Positions 7,040 through 63,158 of a stretch of 64,000 nucleotides of DNA are shown here, in pieces. Position 1 is the stretch's first letter, and each line of letters opens with the position of its first letter. Under the pieces are notes generated by a model. It was given only the letters and a program-made list of their open reading frames with translations, made no database searches and was not told the DNA's origin. The translations under genes were made by a program, and so were the position numbers. Origin of the DNA: Asterias rubens (taxonomy: Eukaryota); assembly GCF_902459465.1 (NCBI RefSeq), contig NC_047076.1, positions 9,176,001-9,240,000 of the forward strand, written 5' to 3'.

Positions 7040-7421
7040 TTAAAGGCAGTGGACACCATTGGTAATTACTCAAAATAATTATTAATAGCATAAAACCTTA
7101 CTTGGTAACAAGTAATGGGGAGAGGTTGATAGTATAAAACGTTGGGAGAAACGGCTCCCTCTAATGTGACGTAGTTTCGAGAAAGAAGTAATTTTCCACG
7201 AATTTGAGATATCAGAATAAGATTTTAAGGTCTTGAAATCAAGCATCTGAAAGTACACAACTTCATGTGACAAGGGTGCTTTTTCTTTCATAGTTATCTC
7301 GCAACTTCGATGACCAATCGAGCTCAAATTATCACAGGTTTGTTATTTTATGCATATGTTGAGATACACCAAGTGAGAAGACTGGTCTTTGACAATTACC
7401 AATAGTGTCCAGTGCCTTTAA
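7040..7421. mobile_element. Kolobok/T2-like MITE, family A
   Basis: TTAA-AGGCAGTGGACACCATTGGTAAT...ATTACCAATAGTGTCCAGTGCCT-TTAA. Confidence 0.85.
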
Positions 7422-7765
7422 ATATGCTATAATCTCAACTTTGACAGTTTTTCAGATTGAAATTTCTCTCTGGATGACTAGTATGCGTATGAACTTTGTA
7501 ATTATCAATGAGTTTCCTGAGATTGAAGCTAATTAACATTCGCACCCAATGTTACTTAGCAATCCTGTATTACTTTAGATTGCTTAATAACTATAAACTA
7601 TCGTGACGTTACTTATCGTGATGGATGAGTCATAGAGTCCTTGATATTGAAAATATCAGGGTTGTTCAAGGATGAATGAGATATCAGCGGTAACCGGTTC
7701 GCTTAAGGTTCAGGTTCGTCTCATATCAGCTATTTCATTAGCCTATCGTCAAGGTTTTTGTGGAC

Positions 7766-15189: not shown

Positions 15190-15567
15190 TTAAAGGAAAG
15201 GTACACGTTTGGTAATTACTCCAAACAAATATTTAACTTAAAAACTGACTTGGTAACAAGAAATGGAGAGCTGTCGATAGTATAAAACATTGTGGAAAAC
15301 AACTCCTTCTGAAGTAACATAGTTTTTGAGAAAGAGGTAATTTCTCACTAAAATAATAAGAGACTTCTAGCCAGAAGTCTTTTACTCCTATCTGAAAGCA
15401 CACAGATTCGTCCAACAAGGGTGTTTTTTTCTTTCATCATTTTCTCGCAACTTCGATGACCAATTGAGCCCAAGTTTTCACAGGCTTGTTATTTTATGCT
15501 TATGAGGGGATACACCAAGTGAAGACACTGGTCTTTGACAATTACCAAAAAGGTACAGTGCCTTTAA
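15190..15567. mobile_element. Kolobok/T2-like MITE, family A variant
   Basis: TTAA-AGGAAAGGTACAC...GTACAGTGCCT-TTAA; internal sequence shared with family A. Confidence 0.8.
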
Positions 15568-16015
15568 ATATCGTCTCTGATATTCTGAAATAATATCGAT
15601 TGGTTTGAAAATATAAAACAAAAACAAGGATGTAATAAAACGAACTCTATGAATATTGATTGAAAGAAACAATGAAATGACACTATGAGTCACACCTATA
15701 ATATAGCTATCACTGGTTGCTGGTAGAACAGGCTTTGCTTGCATTATTATGCAAATCGTTAGATTTTATTGTCTGTCACATTTAATGACTCAACCTATTT
15801 ATTGTTGAGTAATTAATTTTAGCAGGAAGCTTTAGGAGGCTGATTAATAAAGATGGTGGTATCTTATATCCTGTATGGTCGGTGGTGACATTAGCAAAAA
15901 CAAGAATGAGGGATGAATGACTACAAGATTTATGGTCAGAGAAATGAGTTGCAAACTTCTGTTTTGTGAGGTTTTCATGGCATGGAAGTATTTTCCAGAG
16001 TTGAGCTTGGGCCTT

Positions 16016-16393
16016 TTAAAGCCAGTGGACACTATTGGTAAATGTCAAATACCAGTCTTCTCACTTGGTGTACCTCAACATATGCATAAAATAACAAACC
16101 AGTGAAAATTTGAGCTCGATTGGTCATCAGAGTTGCGAGATAACTATGAAAGAAAAACCCATTGTCACATGAAGTTGTGTGCGTTTAGATGGTTGATTTC
16201 GAGACCTCAAATTCTAAACTTGAGGTCTCGAAATCAAATTCGTGGAAAATTACTTCTTTTTCGAAAACTACTCCACTTCAGAAGGAGCAGTTTCTCACAA
16301 TGTTTTATACCAACCTCTCCCCATTACTCGCTACCAAGTAAGGTTTTATTATAATTATTTTGAGTAATTACCAATAGTGTCCACTGCCTTTCA
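16016..16393. mobile_element. Kolobok/T2-like MITE, family A
   Basis: TIRs GCCAGTGGACACTATTGGTAA / TTACCAATAGTGTCCACTGC. Confidence 0.85.
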
Positions 16394-20822: not shown

Positions 20823-21059
20823 TTAAAGACAGTGGACACTATTGGTAATTGTCAAAGACCAGTCTTCTCACTTGGTGTATCTCAACATATGCATAAAATA
20901 ACAAAACTGTGAAAATTTAAGCTCAATCGGTCATCAAAGTTGGGAGATAATAATGAAATAAAAAACAACCTATCAACCTCTCCCCATTACTCGCTACCAA
21001 GTAAGGTTTTGTGCTAATAATAATTTTGAGTAATTACCAATAGTGTCCACTGCTTTTAA
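20823..21059. mobile_element. Kolobok/T2-like MITE, family A, internally deleted
   Basis: Both TIRs and TTAA flanks present. Confidence 0.85.
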
Positions 21060-22219: not shown

Positions 22220-24038
22220 CTGTGAGGAAAAGCAAAAAAATTGGAAAACAAACATTTTAAAAAGTGTACAAGTTGTGTAAGTTCAGAAAATAACTACAAA
22301 TACAGTTCCAACAGTTCCAAGGGGAAACAGTTGTTCACTTCAGATTTTATTATCGCTAAGCACCTTTATAAAAATTAAGCATCATACAATTTCTGTTGCA
22401 TTTAGACTGTATACTGCTATAGGGCTTCCAGAACCCACATGACACAGTTCTGTGGTTACAGCTATTTTAGCCACAGAGGATGGGTTTTGATGTTTATACA
22501 CCTTTTTGTCACTAGCACTGAAATAAAAAATTGCAGGTTGTACACCCTTTTCATAATCTGATTCAAATTATTAGGTCAAATGTATTTGAGTTGCTTAAAC
22601 AAAAGAAAAATACACATGGTGTTACCGCAAACCAAATATACATTTCCATGCAATTCCTCAAATCCTTCGAAAGAAACAAGCTTAGCAAAAAAAAAACTTC
22701 AACTACTAATATTGTTTTTCTTTGGTTGTTTTTGCACTAACAGTAACACTGATGATGTGTTTTAACACATTGTGTATATTGTGTAATATACATCAATGTA
22801 AGGTCAACAACCAAATATTGATCTTCATCCCTGATGCCAAATTAACACAAACCATCAAATTCTGCTAACTGTTAGTGGTAATTCGCATACTAGTAAAATC
22901 TACCAGCTAAATAACCAGGTCACGTGTACTGTTGACTGTTTTTGGTTTAGGTTTTGGGTTTTGGGGTTTCATGATCATTATTCTGAAATGAGACAGAGTT
23001 TATGATTGCATTGCCCTTGGGTTCATCCGGGCTGACATTGGGTTATGATGACCCATCAGACTGGTGGACTCATTTCCCTTGTTCCATACCGCTATCTCTT
23101 GACACCATGGCGCGTTTCCTATCAACAAAAACCTTAAAGGGATGGAACAACTTAGTTAAAAAAATTTTGTGTTGTTCCTAATCATTTCCATCATACAGTT
23201 AGCCAGAGGTGTGTCTGGGTGTCGTTTGGACACCCTGTTTTCTGTTTTGATACCCTATTCGGTCTTTACTCTTTTATGTAAAATGTATTGTAAGTGTATG
23301 GTTTGGAAACTCAGTTTGGAAATTGACTGGCAAATTTGGAGAGCCTGTTACCTATAATATATTTTATAAGCCTTTTACTAAATTCCAAAACGGTTATTTT
23401 CATTACATCAATGTTTTAAAGACACTGGACACCTTTGGTAATTGTCAAAGACCAGTCTTCTCACTTTGCTGTATCTCAACATATGTACAAAATAACAAAC
23501 CTGTGAAAATTTTATCCACTTATCTGATGAGTGAGAATCCTGTAATTTTAACATTGACAATTGGCGAAATATTGCCAATAGTAGCACCTCCAACCAAACA
23601 AGTCCTGCAGTCATGTACTTTTTTAATATAATATTCAGAAATTTTTTTTACTGCGATAGATTAAACTTTGCTGTCTATTTAAAAAGTAAATTTCAGCCTT
23701 TCATTTTACTTTGGAAGAAAAGTTACAAAGACATTCGTAAAAACCAAATTATGAACTTTTTCACAAATTTGAAAGAGCGAAACTTTTAAATAACAGACAT
23801 TATTGGCTTACATCCGAGAGTGGAATACAGAAATGTTCACCGAACTATTTCTACACAGCAACCTGAAATACATTGATAATGCACGTCGACATTGGATACA
23901 ATTTCGATACCAAAACATTATTCTCTCTGGTAGAGGCTATACAAACAATAATTTAACCTCAATAAATCGATGGAGCCTTATAAAAAAATGCCACAAGACA
24001 ACAACACTTAAATATTGTTACAGAAATTCAATACTTAC

Positions 24039-24164
24039 GTCTGTGAACTTGTGACCCAGAAATGTGTTGAGCAACGCAGACTTTCCACAGCCTGTGTCCC
24101 CGACAACAACGAGTTTATTCCGGACAACTTCATTCAAAACCATCATAGAACGTTGCCGACGCAT
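24039..24164 (-). CDS. RND: Rnd-family atypical Rho GTPase, coding exon 1 (MRRQRSMMVLNEVVRNKLVVVGDTGCGKSALLNTFLGHKFTD)
   Basis: P-loop GDTGCGKS in a Rho-type context (KLVVVG); ends at a phase-0 GAC|GTAAGT donor; the start could also be the ATG at 24146. Confidence 0.9.
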
Positions 24165-24834
24165 TTTGGCAAAGTTTGTCTGTTTCCAAATTGTAAAATA
24201 AAGCCTAGAATTAAGTTCGCTGTACCAGCTCTCACACAAAATATTTTCCCGATGAACTGCAATGTTTTGGTAGTAGCTGACTGGTTGAGCAGACGATAAC
24301 TTGCGTTGTTTCTCTCTGTGGCTTGCTGGCTGTTATGAGACGTGAGTGACAGGTTGACAACTCCAGCGTCACGTGTCTATTTTAAGTATTCATTTATGCG
24401 TAAATGCTTGACCAATCAAATGCCGGTATAAGTCTATGGATAATCATTGGCCGACTCGTCCCCGCTTTACTCCATTGACCAATCATTTAACTCGAATGAG
24501 ACACACCTCCATCACACCCCTGAGTGTAAATTATGATTATGACGACTGAGGGCGCTAGACTATTATTTTTGGTGTCCAGCGAGCGAAAATGTCAGGGGAA
24601 AATAATTTGCCCATAAAATAAGGTCCGACATAAATGAAGCATACAAATTATCTCCATAAAGAAAAATAAGTACGACAAATCCCTTGTCTATCCCCCCATC
24701 ACCAGCATTGTTTTGTTCACTACGAGCAAAATGCAAAAGATTTGTTTTGACTGCTTAACGCATTTGTTCGGATACGATTCATTGTCGTTGTACAAGCGCG
24801 TTAAAAACGATCCGACAAACTATCAACACCAACA
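24165..24834. promoter_or_regulatory. Putative bidirectional promoter (670 bp) between RND and the Crypton/Harbinger-derived gene
   Basis: Divergent start codons at 24164 (-) and 24835 (+); CCAAT/ATTGG boxes at 24412, 24446 and 24479; GTCACGTG at 24368. Confidence 0.6.
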
Positions 24835-27485
24835 ATGGCGGCTAGTTCGGAAGAAACTCCAGGGTTCGCCTCGGCGCAATATCCCGATTCGAAAGACTTA
24901 CTCCACGTTGAGGACTCTAAAAACACAGTCAAGCAAATTAAATATGCGACAAGCAGACTGGAAGCTTACACAAGAACTGTAGGTACGACCATGGCGTCTG
25001 TGGAGTCTCTAACAATCGGTGAACTCGACGATTTTCTTTGTCAATTTTACACAAGTTTACGGAAAGGTGACGGCCAAGCATACACAAGAAAATCGATGCT
25101 TGCAATTCGGTTTGGCCTGCAGAGACACTTCCAATCCTTGCACAGCTGGAAACTCTGTAAGAATGCCTTATTTGCTGGAAGTAATAAGGTATTTCAGGGA
25201 ATGTTGGTCAACTTGAATTGGAAAGGAAAGAATAATAAAGTGATACACAAGGAGGGTCCGATCTCCGTGGCGGATATGAACAAAATTCAAACATCCAATG
25301 CGTTGGATTTGAGTTCCCCGACTGGGCTACAGAATAAGGTGTTCATCGACATCACAGTATATTTTGGGATTGTCGGATGTGAAAAAATGCGTGACATGAA
25401 GCCGAATGATTTTACGTTTTCAAGAACTGGAGATAACATTCGTTATGTAATTGTAACAAACTGCAGTCAAAAGACATGTCAAAGTCGTGACATCATTAGT
25501 GAGAGCTCATGTGAGGGTGTTATGTATGAAATCCCAGGCTATGACAGATGCCCCGTAGCGTCCTTGGAGAAATACTTATCAAAATTGAATCCCAAACGCC
25601 CTGATATACTTTGGCAAAAACCAATCCCACATGTACCAGACAATGGACCCTGGTACTTTAGTCGCCCAACACCACTGCACACACTCGGCTCCAAAATGAA
25701 AACGATCTCAGCAAATGCGGGTTGTCGTAAATTGTACACAAACTATTGTCTTAAGGCGACTCCTGTTGGTATTTTACGCATTGCAAGCTCGCTGAGACAG
25801 GCTGCTGACAGGGATATCTCAAACAAGGATGGATTGGAAATCTTATGTAGGTCACGGGAAAACACTCAAGACTTTGCATCGGAAGAGATTCTTTCCGATG
25901 TTTCTTTATCGCTGCTCAAGGATGAGAACAGTAACAAGAGTGCATCTGCTTCTCAACAATTACAAGAGGACCACCCTCACTCTCAAATTGAACAACCTAA
26001 ACAACCCAAGCCTTCAGATCTAGCCACAGCAGAAACTTCAGAAGATCTTCCCTCGTTCTCTTTTCTGTCATCCATAAATCTTAAAGATCTGATGAAAGTG
26101 GAAGATTCTAAGAGCACGAACAGACAGCTCAGATATGCATTGACAAGGTTGGAGGTGTTTGCCAAGCATCTTGGTTCATCGATACCCTTGGTTGAAGCTA
26201 TGTCAATGAGAGAATTAGATGAGTTTCTTTGTCGATTCTATGCCAACTTGCGTAAGTTTGATGGGCAAATGTACACTAAGAAATCAATGCAAGGGATCAG
26301 GTATGGATTGCAGAGATACTTTCAAACATTGCATAACTGGGACATTTGCAAAAAGAGTGCTGAATTCAAAGGGAGCAATAAAGTCTTTAAAGAGATTCTC
26401 ATAAGCATACGGAAAGGAGGTAAAGTGGTAATCAAACACAAAACTCCAATCTCAGCAGCCGATATGGACAAAATTCAATCTTCCCCGGAGTTGGATATGA
26501 AATCTCCAAGGGGACTCCAGAATAAAGTCTTTTTTGACATTATGGTTTATTTGGGCAAATCAAACCAATACCGCATGCAAGAGATGAAGCCGAGCGATTT
26601 CACGGTTGCCAGAGACAGCAATTATAATCAGTATGTCTCAAAATGTGGCCATAGCTTCAGTGAAGATGATCATGAATTTACCAAGGGTGCTATGTTCGAG
26701 ATTTCAAACTCTGACAAATGTCCTGTGAGGTCATTTCAAAAGTACTTGTCAAAGTTGAATCCAAACCGCCCGGATTTGTTTTGGCAACGACCTAGAGAAA
26801 CAGCACCAAAGACTGGTCCATGGTACATTGATGCCCCTGTAGGACTTCATTCCCTCAGTGACAAAGTGAAAATAATTTCAACTAATGCTGAATGTAGGAA
26901 AGTCTACACCAATGACTGTCTCAGAATTACCCCTGTGGCTGTTCTACGTAGCAAGGGGATGATGAAAGACTATCACAGTAGATCAAGCGACACTGAAAGT
27001 TATTCGAATTCAGACAACAGCCTCTTAGAAGACTGGACGCACAATGATGACAATCCTCAAACTTCATGGCAGCGCCAGAGTACACCTCCAATTTCTGCAG
27101 CTTCTTCAGACATGCAGGCATCACGAACAGACTCCCAACACCAGTCCAAGAACAAGGACAACAACCAAGATACACTTCAGGCCGAGCACTCGGGGCAAAC
27201 GCTCCAAGAGAAAAACCCAACTCTTTTCCCGGTCAAACGAAAACGTGCCCCAGGCGGGGGCAGAAAGCGACTCCCACAAGCAGAGAAGAAAAAAGCCATC
27301 AAAGCTGCTCAAAAGAAGTACAGAATGTCGCATAGCCGCGAGCCTGACAATCGGCTGAAGCTATCGCCTAGCATCAGTACCCTGTGGCTTCCCCTGTCGT
27401 ATAAACTTGGACTTGACAAGAATCAGCTCGCAATAAAGCTTCTGGAACTCTATCACGCATCTCAAGGATCAACTGATGTTAACTT
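24835..27485 (+). CDS. Exon 1 of a chimeric transposon-derived gene: two tandem Crypton tyrosine-recombinase-derived (DUF3504 / KCTD1-N / ZMYM-C-like) domains, a basic NLS/AT-hook-like segment and a ZNF653/692-like helical module
   Basis: Motifs ELDxFLCxFYxxLRKxDGQxYTxKSM, GLQNKVFxDI, CPVxSxxKYLSKLNP, WYxxxP and YTNxCL each occur twice (about 24895-25780 and 26086-26960); the ORF ends AAC TT|GTAAGT, so the TAA is part of a splice donor. Confidence 0.88.
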
Positions 27486-27962
27486 GTAAGTTTGAAATGG
27501 TTGGTGCAGGCTTGATACTACATCAGGTGGGATTGCCTTCATGTTCCTGGCACTTGCCTTGGTGCCCCCTGGAGAAATACTGCTTGGCAAGTTTCTTTGC
27601 TTAGAAGCAAAAGTTGAGTGAGATACCAGCCACAATACAGCAAACTTAATGTAAATTTGGCTGGTAACCTATTTCTGCTAGTGCTAAGCAATACTTTCTT
27701 TGCATAGCAAGTTTTAGTGCTTACAGGCTTTATGAAATTTGGCCCTGATACTTCACAGAGGGTAATGGAGGCAAAATTATCTCCTTGCCCACGGGTAAAA
27801 CGACCCCAATTTGATTGAGCTGCTATTGCCTAACAATTTTCTGCTAAGCATAAATGAGCGGGATACTAGTCTCAAATCGTACATGACGAATGTTATACAG
27901 ACTGGTTGGTAATCTTGTTCCGATTTTTAGCATAATAAGCTGTGCTATATGTAAGCTCCTGC

Positions 27963-28324
27963 TTAAAGGGTCTATGTAACTTTTGTAGGACAAAAAACAC
28001 AATGTCCACAGATTTACACTAAACTTACACAGTTTGAAGATAATCATAGTAGAAAGCTTCCCTGAAAATATTATGTGCTGAGGTGCTGTAGTTTTGGGGA
28101 AATGAGTAAAACAATGTCATGAAAACAATTTTCGTCTCATGAGACAAAAATTATTTTAATCATTTACAAACATATTTTAATGACATTGTTTTACTCATTT
28201 CTCAAAAACTACAGCACCTCAGTAAGTAATATTTGAAGGGAAGCTTTCCACTATCATTATCTTTAACCCCTGTAAGTTTAATGTAAACCTATGGACATTT
28301 TGAAAAGGTACCCAAATCCTTTAA
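27963..28324. mobile_element. Kolobok-like MITE, family C, in the intron of the chimeric gene
   Basis: TTAAAGGG...CCTTTAA termini; internal inverted symmetry. Confidence 0.7.
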
Positions 28325-29148
28325 GTGCTTTAAGCAGCTAGATGAAATTGGGCTCTGGTCATTGCCTTGGTGTCCCTTTAAATGTTTCAGTACAAATACA
28401 TCACTGATTGAGGTGCCCTTTTACTCAGGAAAATCCACCTTGCCCTTAGAAGAGTGTATTATCTGGTATGTTGGTGGTATCAACCATGAAACTTTATAGT
28501 ACAATAATGGTGGTATTAGCAGCCCTGGTTCGTGTTTCATAGAGCTGTTTTAAAAGCAGAAAATATTGCTTGAACATTTTCTGCTAAGCAAAAATATGCT
28601 CGATACCAGTCACAGATTGTACATGTGGCGTTTGACTGGCTGCCGACCTTATTCTGGTAAACATAATTTAATTGTGCTTATATGTAGCTACTTTGGTGCT
28701 TAAGCAGCTCTTTGAAATTGGACCCTGGAAGTAGGTCATTGGGCTTGTGACCTTAACTGCTGACCTGGGAGAAAAATCATCATCGATTGGATACAACCAG
28801 ACTAAAGATCCCATTTCTCTTGCTAAACAAGGAATAGGGATTTTTCTTCTTCTGATAAAACAACTCGTAAAGTATTACTTTTTCATATAATATTTTCTTT
28901 GAATAACAAGCTTGATATCTTTTGCAAGTGTTAAACGACCAATTTTTTTTTCAGATGTTGTGCCATCACCGATTTCACATCAGTGTAACTTTTAAGAAGA
29001 CATTTTACTTAGGTGAACTAGACTTTGAGAAATGGCTTTTTAAGATCTAATGGCCAGATACTTTACAAACAAAGGCTTCTACATGTATGTAATTTATAGA
29101 GTCGTGATTTTTAACAAAACGTTTCAATTTTTCTATTTACCTGTACAG

Positions 29149-30046
29149 CTTTGGTGAAAAATCGACCCCCCTGAGAAGTTGCATCGGATTTCACGGCTGG
29201 AAAGATGTGCGTTACTCGGACAGCCTGGTCATGGAAATCACTGGTGTCTCCTTAAAGACGTTTCATATCCTCCTTGAGCAGCTTCCAGATCCCCTACCCA
29301 TACTTGGAGGTCTGACCACTGAGAATGGGCTTCTCATGTTCCTGATGAAGCTACGGATGGACCCACCGTATAAGTACCTCGCAGCTCAGTTCAGTGTGGC
29401 CCAGGCGACCATTGAGCAAACCTTCCTCTGCATCTTAGTCTACCTTGTGGAGCTGTCTTCTGCTTGCATTCAATGGCCACTTAAGGAGACAGTGCTCAGC
29501 AAGATGCCACCGTGCATCAAGAGAAGCTACCCTAAGTGTAGACTCGTCTTGGACTGTCTTCAGATTGAAGTGGAGGCACCGGAGCAACTGCGGGATCAGC
29601 TACCAATGCTCTCAAGACTGGACAGCACCTTCAAGGCGAAGGCTCTCATCGGGTTGACTCCGAACGGTTGCATCTGCTTTATCTCCAAGTTCTTCTCAGG
29701 GGAGATCCTACAAAGTAAACTGTCGAAGCTAAGCTCTGTCTACTATGCCCTTCATGTCGGCGATCAGGTACTCTCGTTACAGCCCGATAGTTTCATAAGC
29801 AGCATGCAAGGAGTCTCCATCTTCCAAGCTCCAATTTTGCCTCGAATAATCACACAGACGAACCCTATTTACAAAGAGGAGTCCGTCCTCTTGAACAAGC
29901 ACGTTGACATGCTGAAACAGCGGCTACGATCTTTTGGAATCTTGAGATCCAAGTTGCCATGCGACATGTTGCCGCACATTGAAATGTTGGTCCATATATG
30001 CGCTGTTCTGGCAAACTTTGAAACTGCTGCACAGGGAGATAAATGA
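29149..30046 (+). CDS. Exon 2 of the chimeric gene: PIF/Harbinger (ISL2EU-type) transposase-derived HTH plus degenerate DDE domain
   Basis: Acceptor TTTTCTATTTACCTGTACAG|C; frame open from 29150 to TGA 30046; motifs LLMFLMKLR..LAAQFSVAQAT, RLVLDC, LIGLTPNGCICFISKFFSG; phase 2 matches the donor at 27485 (TT+C = Phe). Confidence 0.85.
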
Positions 30047-32373: not shown

Positions 32374-32752
32374 TTAAAGGCAGTGGATACTACATGTATT
32401 GGTAATTACTCAAAAAACCTTTCTTGATTACGAGTAATGGGGAGAGGTTGATAGTATATAAAACATTGTGAGAAACAGCTCCCTCTGAAGTGACGTAGTT
32501 TTCGAGAAAGAAGTAATTTTCCACGAATTTGATTTCAAGACCTCAGATTTAGAATTTGAGGTCTAGAAATCAAGCATCTGAAAGCACACAGCTTTGACCA
32601 TGGTGCGGCAAGGGTGTTTTTTCTTTCATTAATATCTCGCAACTTTGACGACCGATTAAGCTCAAATTTTCACAGGTTATATGCATATGTTGAGATACAC
32701 CAATTGTGAAGACTAGTCTTTGACAATTACCAATAGTGTCCAGTGTCTTTAA
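32374..32752. mobile_element. Kolobok/T2-like MITE, family A
   Basis: TTAA flanks and TIRs. Confidence 0.85.
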
Positions 32753-34889
32753 ACATGAAATACAAGACTCTTGGAAAAGAGCGGAACGCATTTAATTTCA
32801 GCGGATGCTGTTCACGGTTCAGGTCAAGAGAGGGCGCTGTAACCAGTAAAACATTAAAAGATTAGTGCCTGCTCGGGCCCGCTAGATAAGTTGACCCCTC
32901 ATGACCATGTTTCAGCCATCCAGGGGTCGATTTCACAAAGCAATAAAATCCAAATTGTCAAACCACTCAGAATAAATTTATTCATTGAGTGGTTTTATCC
33001 GTTAAATACATTAAATTTATTCAAAACTATTTGCTGATTAGTGGTTCCAGCATTTTTTTTAGCAGCAGATTGGTGGTCATGCATATTTATGATTATGTTG
33101 TGTATTGTGACTCATTGTGTATTTTTTAAACAAGAAAACTTCTTTCCCGATGGACCAATGGAAGAGGAAATGATTTGTATACAGCTCATGAATATTTCAG
33201 TTTGATTTGCTCGTCATTAGTCAATTAACATTTGCCTTTTATAATCAAGTTGTACACTCTTACAGTGGCTGTGTTGTCTTGATCAAAGCAGGCCTTTGGC
33301 TGTACATGGAATTCACAACCCTCACTCAGTTATTGAATGCCACCACCTTTTATTTATAATAAAACAGAATTTGACATTTATAATGCGCACAAATCTGCAA
33401 AAAAAAAAAAAAATGCTCATAGATCAAACAAAAGCAACAATAACAGTTACCTGGTACTTGCTCTATGCTGGTACATAATAAGATGCAATCATATGATTTA
33501 TCATTGGCAAAACAGAATGAGCATTTACACGATCCTGACCATAAGCAGAGTGTGTTTTCAGCCTGTTTGCGAAAGTCTCAAGTGATGGAGAAGCCTAATT
33601 ATACATGATTGGGAAGTGAGTTCCATAACCGGGAGCTGTGACAGAGAGAGAGAGCTGTCGCCCCAGTACCTACTGGTATATAGCAGGCCTTTATGCTTCA
33701 TTTTTGAAAGGGCTAGGGCACCAAGGCATTTTCTCCTTGGTAAAGGGCACCCTATGGGGAAATTGTAAATTTCTACTGGAGCATTTCAAGGGCACCAAGG
33801 CACTGACCAGGGGCATGGAGGCAATCGCCTTCGTTGCCTCTCTGAAGTATCAGACCTGATATAGGCCTAATTTAGGTTCTGCTATAGACGCATTTTGCAG
33901 CTGATCGCAAACAATTGGGCATATACAAATTGTTTCTTTTTGATTAGTCACCATTGCTTGTTATTTTGGATCACACAAAGTGCAGATATTTGTCTTTGGC
34001 AATTAAAAATCTCGTCCACATCAAACATTATGTACATTGTTTATAAATGCTGATGAAATGCTTGACAGTGTTGTGTTCATTTAATGTTGTCATATCAATT
34101 TAAGCTGTAATAAATGGTTGAAGCTTTTACAATATCCATTGTGTACATTTATCTGTCAGTCTGGTAGTCTTTTTCCCCATTAGAATTCCCTAGATTTTTT
34201 TTTGATTCTCACTTCCATTCATTTTCTTTCAATTTTGAAAAGCTCTTAAAGCCATTGGACCCTTTCGGTACAGAAAAAAATTTCACATATTTACAAATAA
34301 CTTGCAGGGTTTACAGAAGGTAGTGTGAAAGACTTCTCTTGAAATATTATTCCATGAAATGCTTATGACACGGCGAAATGCGCGGATACAAGGGTTTTTC
34401 CCGTTATTTTCTTCCGACTCCGATGACCGATTGAGCCTAAATTTTCACAGGTTTATTATTTTGATACAGCAGTTGTGATACACGAAGTGTGGGCCTTGGA
34501 TAATACTGTTTACCAAAAGGGTACAATGTCAAAAGACTGCAGAGGTTTAGTACAAATAAGGTTTTTATTTTGATTGAGTCACTATCTTGTCAAGTTATTG
34601 TTTTATTAATTCAGACCAGGGCGGAGATGGGTGGAGGAAGTACAGTAACTTGGCAATGCTAAGAGACAGGACTGGTTCTAAGTTAGGACCAGTAACTGAC
34701 TGATTAATTAATTTTCAATTAGTAACCCAATCATCTTGGTCTTGGATTTATATGACAATGTTACACATTGAATTGAACAGTTTGTTCGTACAACAAACAA
34801 TGGGGAATATTTTCATGAGCAAGCTGTTGTTTCACACACAGAGGGCGCTGTTTTAAAAGTGTAGAGAAAAAAAGGTGACTGGCGAAAAA

Positions 34890-62804: not shown

Positions 62805-63158
62805 TTAAAGACACTGGACACTATTGGTAATTGTCTAAGACCAGTCTTCTCACTTGGTGTATCTCAACATATGCATAAAATAAAAAACCTGTGAAAACTT
62901 GAGCTCAATTGGTTGTCGAAGTTGCGAGATAGTAATGAAAGAAAAAACACCCATGTCACACAAAGTTGTGTACTTTCAGATGCTTGATTTTGAGACCTCA
63001 AAATCTAATTGAGGTCTCGAAATCAAATTCGTCACTTCAGACGGAGCCGTTTCTCACAATGTTTTATATTATCAACAACTCTCCATTACTTGTTACCAAG
63101 TAAGGTTTTGTGCTGATAATTATTTTGAGTAATTACCAATAGTGTCCACTGCCTTTAA
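62805..63158. mobile_element. Kolobok/T2-like MITE, family A (partial copies also at about 6115-6440, 6695-6775, 23414-23520 and 34246-34530)
   Basis: TTAA flanks and TIRs. Confidence 0.85.

Follow-up and report, generated by a model that had tools for sequence, protein, structure and literature searches.

Can the inactivated enzymes of two unrelated classes of transposons be built into a single host protein? This question is raised by a locus in a 64,000-nt stretch of Asterias rubens DNA (contig NC_047076.1, positions 9,176,001 to 9,240,000; hereafter the window, whose own numbering is used throughout), in which two open reading frames (ORFs) follow each other on the plus strand between positions 24835 and 30046. 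A sequence-only reading of the window had proposed that they form a hidden two-exon gene of 1182 amino acids (aa), spliced at 27485|29149 without a frameshift, in which two Crypton tyrosine recombinases are fused to a Harbinger DDE transposase. It had further stated that the catalytic residues are lost, that the gene lacks terminal inverted repeats (TIRs) and that no protein joining tyrosine recombinase and DDE domains was known, and had named as checks searches with hidden Markov models (HMMs), a search for single-copy syntenic orthologs, the ratio of nonsynonymous to synonymous substitution rates (dN/dS) and structure prediction. Our analysis indicates that the locus is very probably one two-exon, protein-coding host gene of about 1182 aa, spliced at 27485|29149 and composed of two dead Crypton units and a Harbinger core.

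In the ORF list, ORF 1 (24835..27489, +) starts with ATG and encodes 884 aa, and frame 2 is open up to position 30046, with 29149-30046 forming the Harbinger frame. The TAA stop codon of ORF 1 (27487-27489) falls within a consensus splice donor, AAC TT|GTAAGT, at 27481-27491, and a pyrimidine-rich acceptor, ...TTTCTATTTACCTGTACAG|C, ends at 29148. Coding exon 1 (24835..27485, +; 2651 nt, ending in phase 2), identified from the ORF and its match to RefSeq, contains two Crypton-derived units, linkers and a basic helical tail module. It would be joined across a phase-2 intron (GTAAGT...ACAG, 27486..29148, +), whose splice sites are kept in Asterias amurensis, to coding exon 2 (29149..30046, +; 898 nt including the stop codon at 30044-30046), which holds the Harbinger transposase-derived core. 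The two exons add up to 3549 nt in frame, and this splice, giving 1182 aa with no frameshift as had been proposed, matches the join in RefSeq. The RefSeq protein XP_033639392.1 (A. rubens LOC117299909, uncharacterized protein; 1130 aa) comprises both pieces with zero mismatches and carries the predicted junction ...STDVN-F-FGEK. Hence the gene cannot be called hidden, since RefSeq already models it in both A. rubens and A. amurensis. When the 884-aa piece was used as a query, an A. amurensis protein of 1129 aa came up that bears all four Pfam families described below, and its 90% cluster contains XP_033639392.1.

The RefSeq protein starts at Met53 of the ORF beginning at 24835. The ATG at 24835 is the first one downstream of an in-frame stop codon and is conserved in A. 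amurensis, and the 52 residues ahead of Met53 find counterparts, on alignment, in the conserved N-termini of unit 2 and of the Crypton unit of Acanthaster planci, so that the full length is more likely, as judged from these alignments, to be 1182 aa than the 1130 aa of RefSeq. On the side of exon 2, an in-frame stop codon (29105-29107) lies just upstream and the first Met occurs only after the motif GFHGW, which is conserved from canonical transposases through all the sea-star orthologs. Therefore, exon 2 needs an upstream exon for its translation. Logan and ENA contigs with the 884-aa and 271-aa pieces were considered as possible transcripts and rejected, because they match the window at 100% and 99.97% identity and contain intron sequence, which shows that they are genomic.

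To identify the domains, Pfam was run on the exon 1 and exon 2 pieces separately, and four families scored above their curated cut-offs. DUF3504 (PF12012; 67 bits against a cut-off of 29.7) and the QRICH1 domain (PF25561; 34.1 bits against 30.8) were each found in two stretches of exon 1, and HTH_Tnp_4 and DDE_Tnp_4 were found in exon 2. The HMM search thereby bore out the proposed domain composition (DUF3504, HTH_Tnp_4 and DDE_Tnp_4) and added the QRICH1 domain to it. Crypton-derived unit 1 (24835..25839, +; aa 1-335), delimited by Pfam and alignment with intact Cryptons, consists of a QRICH1-type core-binding part and a DUF3504 catalytic-like part. Crypton-derived unit 2 (26020..26994, +; aa about 396-720) was delimited in the same way and by an AlphaFold model.

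The intact Cryptons among the matches carry NRG..E (with the box I Arg), HCLR (the H-x-x-R motif), a G-H motif and the Tyr nucleophile. Alignment with them showed that in unit 1 the box I Arg is replaced by Val, the HxxR motif reads YCLK (His to Tyr, Arg to Lys) and the Tyr region is missing. In unit 2 the box I Arg is replaced by Ser, HxxR reads DCLR (His to Asp), and the segment that bears the GH motif in intact Cryptons is deleted. As read from the alignment, each Asterias unit is without at least two of the R-H-R-Y catalytic residues, and the intact tetrad that marks an active Crypton transposon is incomplete in both. The model of unit 2, built on a 72-sequence alignment, had a predicted local distance difference test score (pLDDT) of 86.8 and a predicted template modelling score of 0.76. 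Its top match in Foldseek was 9hjt_H (QRICH1 in Zincore-ZFP91-DNA), followed by more than 20 Cre-loxP chains with E < 1e-3. The structure prediction thus came out in favour of the recombinase assignment, and in this model unit 2 keeps the Cre-like two-domain clamp fold.

Exon 1 ends with a basic module (27235..27453, +), which reads KRKR...GGGRKR...AQKKYR and continues into predicted helices. Over 76 aa it shares 41% identity with the alternative first exon used by isoform X1 of LOC119745688 in Patiria miniata, and it is likely a nuclear-localisation or DNA-contact segment. In the ESM Atlas, the module found just leads below 0.9, such as small ribbon-helix-helix proteins.

In exon 2, the HTH_Tnp_4 helix-turn-helix (PF13613; 29312..29449, +; residues 55-100 of the exon-2 piece) scored 34.7 bits against a cut-off of 27, and the DDE_Tnp_4 RNase H-like domain (PF13359; 29549..30016, +) scored 45.6 bits against 24.8. 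The canonical THAP-Harbinger transposases P0163 and P0127, which are the closest canonical relatives of the sea-star Harbinger part (about 30% identical) and served as aligned references, reach 144-145 bits on DDE_Tnp_4. Compared with them, the catalytic triad reads D, L, D: the first Asp is kept, the second Asp (in ADKGF) is replaced by Leu, and the Glu (in VER) is replaced by Asp, so that the complete DDE triad of an active Harbinger transposon is absent. The Leu stands right after a predicted strand, with an Asp three residues further on. The same substitutions are present in Asterias, A. planci and P. miniata. The DDE domain was modelled with a pLDDT of 70-90, and its matches to integrase/transposase (RNase H-like) folds were weak, with a best E of 8e-4. 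From these substitutions, the Harbinger part is likely dead and its loss of activity old. The claimed loss of catalytic residues thus stands for both Crypton units, and is likely, if less firm, for the Harbinger part, where the first Asp is kept and where the Asp three residues after the lost second Asp, together with the Glu-to-Asp change, leaves some room for residual metal binding, a point that speaks against complete inactivation.

Searches with the Harbinger part returned just two further close relatives. Compared with A. rubens LOC117299909 as the reference (about 1182 aa; two Crypton units and the basic module), A. planci LOC110973579 (702 aa) is 54% identical in the Harbinger part and has one Crypton unit, and P. 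miniata LOC119745688 (426 or 422 aa) is 52% identical in this part and has the basic-module exon (isoform X1) or THAP exons (isoform X2). In Asterias, Acanthaster and Patiria, the last intron is in phase 2 and is located exactly 12 residues ahead of GFHGW. A Ras/Roc-family GTPase gene adjoins the ortholog in all four species compared (both Asterias species, A. planci and P. miniata), in head-to-head orientation in Asterias and Patiria, whereas in A. planci it is inverted. The expected single-copy syntenic orthologs were therefore found in sea-star species, with the Ras-family gene as the adjoining neighbour. In the Harbinger tree, the sea-star sequences formed a clade (support 98/99), whose sister was the metagenomic protein P0166, followed by the canonical THAP-Harbinger transposases. 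P0166, encoded on a 40-kb ENA metagenome contig, is a protein of 621 aa that has the GFHGW motif and a low-complexity N-terminus, without Crypton or THAP.

What is spliced to the Harbinger exon differs among these species. In Patiria, two routes lead into it, one through two THAP exons and the other through the alternative basic-module first exon and then a small exon, and no Crypton unit was found in the 46-kb Patiria locus. In A. planci, the Crypton ORF reads in frame into the same donor position, and its unit keeps R, H and R of the tetrad but neither the Tyr nucleophile nor the His belonging to the GH motif. No THAP exon was detected in Asterias (the window and the A. amurensis locus L001) or in the A. 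planci locus, as tblastn with three THAP domains, run at E up to 5, gave chance-level matches alone. The Harbinger exon is best explained as the ancient core, present as a single copy before the divergence of Forcipulatida and Valvatida, and the Crypton units as later additions.

The Patiria gene, whose Harbinger exon is spliced to exons lying 9-25 kb upstream and whose locus has no Crypton unit, also offers a different account of the Asterias locus. In this account there are two separate products, the 884-aa ORF ending at its TAA (27487-27489) and the Harbinger exon belonging to another transcript with other upstream exons, and the RefSeq join is an artefact; a retained intron does give a complete ORF, and the join is drawn from sequence and gene models. 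We consider this improbable. The basic module with which exon 1 ends has its homolog in Patiria in an exon leading into the Harbinger exon by way of the small exon, and this links exon 1 to exon 2 independently of the Asterias gene model. Moreover, the donor overlaps the stop codon and matches the conserved phase-2 acceptor, both sites are kept in A. amurensis, neither the window nor L001 yielded a THAP exon or any other upstream exon, and A. planci independently has a Crypton ORF in frame into the same donor. Several points nevertheless weigh against a single joined gene: the junction 27485|29149 is deduced from gene models, conservation and frame logic; an mRNA retaining the intron would yield the 884-aa protein alone; the N-terminal exons of A. 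planci and P. miniata are known from automatic models alone; and the basic module has no Pfam match at E up to 1, with a three-helix AlphaFold prediction of low confidence. With these points weighed, a single two-exon gene is still preferred, and its joined product is presumably expressed in vivo.

Whether the gene belongs to the host or to a mobile element was addressed by comparison with A. amurensis. Its locus (L001) is collinear with window positions 15.4-37.1 kb at about 95% identity, and both splice sites are conserved. Exon 1 is 97.8% identical between the two species with one 3-nt indel, and exon 2 is 98.8% identical with no indels, compared with 96.0% and 7 indels in the intron and 94.9% and 6 indels in the 5′ intergenic region. 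In the pairwise comparison of the coding parts, where the binomial P is the chance of so low a nonsynonymous count under neutrality, exon 1 from Met53 has 28 synonymous and 28 nonsynonymous differences (dN/dS 0.26, P 1.5e-6). Within it, unit 1 has 9 and 14 (dN/dS 0.41, P 0.038) and unit 2 has 11 and 4 (dN/dS 0.086, P 1.1e-5). Exon 2 has 11 synonymous differences and no nonsynonymous one (dN/dS 0, P 8e-8). The anticipated purifying selection is thus seen in both exons, and it is very strong in exon 2. No TIR pair was found around the gene within the window, as had also been claimed. Neither exon has a second copy within the 64-kb window, the internal Crypton duplication aside, no Myb-like ORF was seen among the window ORFs or in the Pfam scan, and an exhaustive phmmer search gave no additional close Harbinger paralog cluster. 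On this sequence evidence, we read the locus as a host gene under purifying selection and not as a mobile element.

A 9.2-kb inverted pair (23415-23512 and 32664-32753) was examined as candidate TIRs and rejected, because both members are copies of a dispersed repeat of about 350 bp. This short interspersed nuclear element (SINE)-like repeat occurs at least nine times in the window, in full-length or partial form, including at 7089-7426, 15240-15571, 16015-16376, 20823-20971, 23415-23512, 32403-32753 and 62805-63112, and two oppositely oriented copies flank the fusion gene and imitate TIRs.

The existence of MarCry-1_FO in Fusarium oxysporum, a multicopy mobile element that combines a Crypton tyrosine recombinase with a Mariner DDE transposase and has 16-bp TIRs and TA duplications (PMC3212892), shows that composite transposons of this kind occur. 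A mobile or recently mobile Crypton-Harbinger composite might thus be imagined at the Asterias locus as well, the more so as the Asterias annotation includes solo Cryptons whose catalytic motifs are intact (P0033) and the Crypton-Harbinger pairing recurs at other loci and in a mussel. This possibility appears exceedingly remote, since the locus has an orthologous position and a conserved neighbour in four species, no TIRs, strong purifying selection and catalytic residues lost in both types of enzyme. Furthermore, there is no further close Harbinger paralog cluster in the phmmer results, and the other fusions are distant in both trees. The locus is therefore unlike a mobile multicopy unit that has the TIRs and target duplications of its own DDE transposase, and a host gene remains the preferred interpretation.

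A tree of 102 Crypton rows was used to ask whether the Crypton units of the sea-star orthologs were captured once or more than once. The two Asterias units were sisters (support 96) with about 50% amino-acid identity, a level which indicates, on the sequence comparison, that their tandem duplication predates the split of A. rubens and A. amurensis. Their next relative was the Crypton-derived N-terminal exon of A. rubens fumarate-hydratase isoform X1 (P0002; support 97). The A. planci unit grouped instead with a Holothuria protein, in which a Crypton unit is combined with a GFO/IDH/MocA oxidoreductase, and with a Paramuricea sequence (support 98). When the Asterias and A. planci units were forced together, the tree became worse by 59.9 log-likelihood units (approximately unbiased (AU) test, p = 0.006). 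The better reading of these data is that separate Crypton captures, from different Crypton lineages, took place at one locus in Acanthaster and in Asterias. Two points count against it: the group used in the AU test was named after the tree had been seen, and a signal of independent capture could also arise from gene conversion or from rapid evolution in dead domains.

The competing history would be a single ancient Crypton-Harbinger fusion that was lost in Patiria and duplicated in Asterias, with the tree signal arising from rate differences or from gene conversion with genomic Cryptons. It would account for a unit lying N-terminal to the same acceptor in both Asterias and Acanthaster and for the placement, with modest support, of all the units within a single portion of the Crypton tree that comprises 18 rows, and the post hoc choice of the AU group also leaves it more space. 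We regard it as unlikely, given the rejected monophyly and the different nearest relatives of the two sets of units. The junction contexts differ as well: the Asterias units precede the basic module, whereas in A. planci the unit is followed by a sequence homologous to the small exon of Patiria, and the basic module is absent. In addition, A. planci retains R, H and R, and the Asterias units have each lost different residues. Separate captures are thus still favoured.

Crypton-derived units were also observed as N-terminal extensions of fumarase (P0002, A. rubens fumarate hydratase isoform X1) and of the GFO/IDH/MocA oxidoreductase of Holothuria leucospilota (P0005/P0179), which suggests either that 5′ exons of echinoderm genes frequently stem from Cryptons or that the two have been merged in the gene models. 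The Paramuricea sequence (P0028), annotated as CAB4037784.1 in an assembly of the octocoral Paramuricea clavata, retains the HxxR, GH and Tyr motifs intact and shares 61-63% identity with the A. planci unit; its presence there might be due either to horizontal spread of this Crypton lineage or to contamination of the assembly.

How might such a protein work? Harbinger transposases use a separate Myb-like protein for targeting and nuclear import. We propose that the sea-star protein would neither cut nor join DNA, and that the conserved phase-2 acceptor of the Harbinger exon may have served as a docking point that repeatedly took new 5′ exons through exon capture. In Asterias, the Crypton clamps and the basic module might supply recognition of DNA or of a DNA-bound factor, plus nuclear import, and would by analogy take the role played by THAP in Patiria and by the Myb-like partner for Harbinger transposases. 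The dead transposase domain could act as a constant effector or assembly module, comparable to plant ALP1 or to the QRICH1 domain in Zincore. Since tyrosine recombinases bind paired half-sites as dimers (PMC3212892), the two units in one chain could act as a built-in, single-chain dimer. According to the title of structure 9hjt and to Bianchi et al. (2025), as cited in PMC13383152, the QRICH1 structure indicates that a dead Crypton domain is able to hold on to a zinc-finger factor that is bound to DNA, so that recognition of a DNA-bound partner rather than of bare DNA is equally possible. The non-catalytic role in DNA or chromatin binding is one that we infer in its entirety, which is a further reservation about the proposed function.

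The components of this gene have known counterparts. Domesticated PIF/Harbinger genes include vertebrate HARBI1 with NAIF1, plant ALP1 with ALP2 and the Drosophila DPLG genes, and in ALP1 the catalytic residues have been reported to be replaced. Like HARBI1, ALP1 and the DPLG genes, the sea-star gene is single-copy, free of TIRs and under purifying selection on HTH_Tnp_4 and DDE_Tnp_4, a likeness that lies in architecture; like ALP1, it has replaced catalytic residues in the Harbinger part. In contrast to HARBI1 and ALP1, it belongs to the THAP-type Harbinger lineage, and in place of a separate Myb-like protein it has a dead recombinase, fused in cis, as its putative DNA-binding partner. Host-transposase fusions formed by exon capture or alternative splicing are exemplified by SETMAR and PGBD3-ERCC6, and such fusion genes are reportedly the subject of work by Cosby and colleagues in 2021. 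As judged from gene models, the sea-star gene would resemble SETMAR and PGBD3-ERCC6 in that a strong acceptor connects a transposase exon with exons upstream of it, which vary by lineage. What sets it apart from them is that each of its partners stems from a transposon, and that these belong to classes with unrelated mechanisms, tyrosine recombinase and DDE.

On the Crypton side, host genes with a lost tetrad include KCTD1 isoform b, KIAA1958, ZMYM2/3/4, QRICH1 and WOC (Kojima and Jurka, 2011; PMC3212892). The Asterias gene is like these Crypton-derived DUF3504 genes in retaining a tetrad-broken Crypton domain in a conserved host protein, and like KCTD1 isoform b in that one N-terminal exon holds the whole Crypton part and is spliced to a C-terminal domain of unrelated origin. 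Unlike the KCTD1, ZMYM and QRICH1 genes, its partner is itself a transposase relic, it has two tandem units, it is confined to sea stars, and its units derive from echinoderm Crypton lineages according to the tree. It shares with MarCry-1_FO a Crypton tyrosine recombinase and a DDE transposase in one genetic unit, and differs from it in being immobile, in having dead enzymes and in having Harbinger rather than Mariner as its DDE part. Proteins with THAP and DDE_Tnp_4 have been noted in Hydra and Crassostrea (PMC10027918). Patiria isoform X2 and P0163 have the similar arrangement THAP-HTH-DDE_Tnp_4, whereas the Asterias and A. planci genes have a Crypton-derived exon at the N-terminus and no THAP exon was found in them. 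Full-text literature searches gave no paper linking DUF3504 or Crypton to Harbinger in one protein and none naming these loci. The gene model itself is not new; what we did not find in the papers searched is a conserved, selected chimera of two inactivated, mechanistically unrelated transposon enzymes.

The combination of the two domain types is not restricted to this locus. A. amurensis XP_071784608.1 (P0045) has Crypton, THAP, HTH_Tnp_4 and a partial DDE domain. A. planci LOC110986150 (L008 6001-10388) has Crypton, HTH_Tnp_4 and DDE_Tnp_4 in four coding exons, with one intron within the Crypton unit, and sits between unrelated host genes. The mussel Mytilus californianus LOC127721820 (L006 10001-16477) has Crypton, HTH_Tnp_4 and DDE_Tnp_4 in three coding exons, and is matched by a 3072-nt Logan contig with an uninterrupted ORF, which looks like a spliced transcript. 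The statement that no protein with both a tyrosine recombinase and a DDE domain was known therefore has to be qualified, as these three proteins share the combination and MarCry-1_FO pairs a Crypton recombinase with a Mariner DDE transposase (PMC3212892). The Mytilus protein was rejected as an ortholog of the sea-star gene, because its intron positions differ and its Harbinger part is just 19-23% identical. A single ancestral Crypton-Harbinger fusion family was likewise rejected, since both the Crypton and the Harbinger trees put the other fusions far from LOC117299909, which points to separate events. The queries held both domains and thus favoured such fusions, so the frequency of the pairing should not be over-read.

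From these cases, we tentatively entertain, as an idea that is more doubtful than not, that dead Crypton clamps and Harbinger domains are functionally affine and were joined at least four times independently (in Asterias, in Acanthaster, at the other sea-star locus or loci and in Mytilus), and that at the present locus the clamp replaced the THAP finger as targeting module. If this were true, there would be a recurrent modular class of "transposon-on-transposon" regulators, whose members might be host factors for the recognition of Crypton or Harbinger ends, which they would silence or tether. The locus itself offers a natural series for the change of the targeting module of a domesticated transposase, with a THAP finger in one sea star, one Crypton unit in another and two units in a third. 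It also extends the Crypton-derived domains known from vertebrate KCTD1, ZMYM and QRICH1 to recent, lineage-specific captures in echinoderms. As Patiria and Asterias are experimental models, these predictions are testable.

Other features of the locus were recorded along with the gene. A palindromic insertion resembling a miniature inverted-repeat transposable element lies in the intron (27966..28321, no strand assigned) and is not part of the gene product. Its 135-nt arms (27998-28132 and 28168-28302) are 84% complementary, and the A. amurensis intron is without it (a 358-nt gap), so the sequence comparison marks it as a recent insertion or deletion difference between the two species. In A. 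amurensis, a 178-bp fragment of exon 1 (the end of unit 1, corresponding to window positions 25689-25866) is duplicated about 2.4 kb upstream of the gene (L001 7366-7543), and this duplicate is not present in A. rubens. In P. miniata, the model of the orthologous transposase-derived gene spans the entire GTPase gene. In the window, the first coding exon of the Ras/Roc-family GTPase gene (24021..24332, -) was identified by its translation, which contains the P-loop GDTGCGKS and matches the Ras/Roc gene beside the A. planci ortholog. This gene and the fusion gene are arranged head-to-head with about 500 bp (24333-24834) between their start regions, suggesting that the two genes share a bidirectional promoter.

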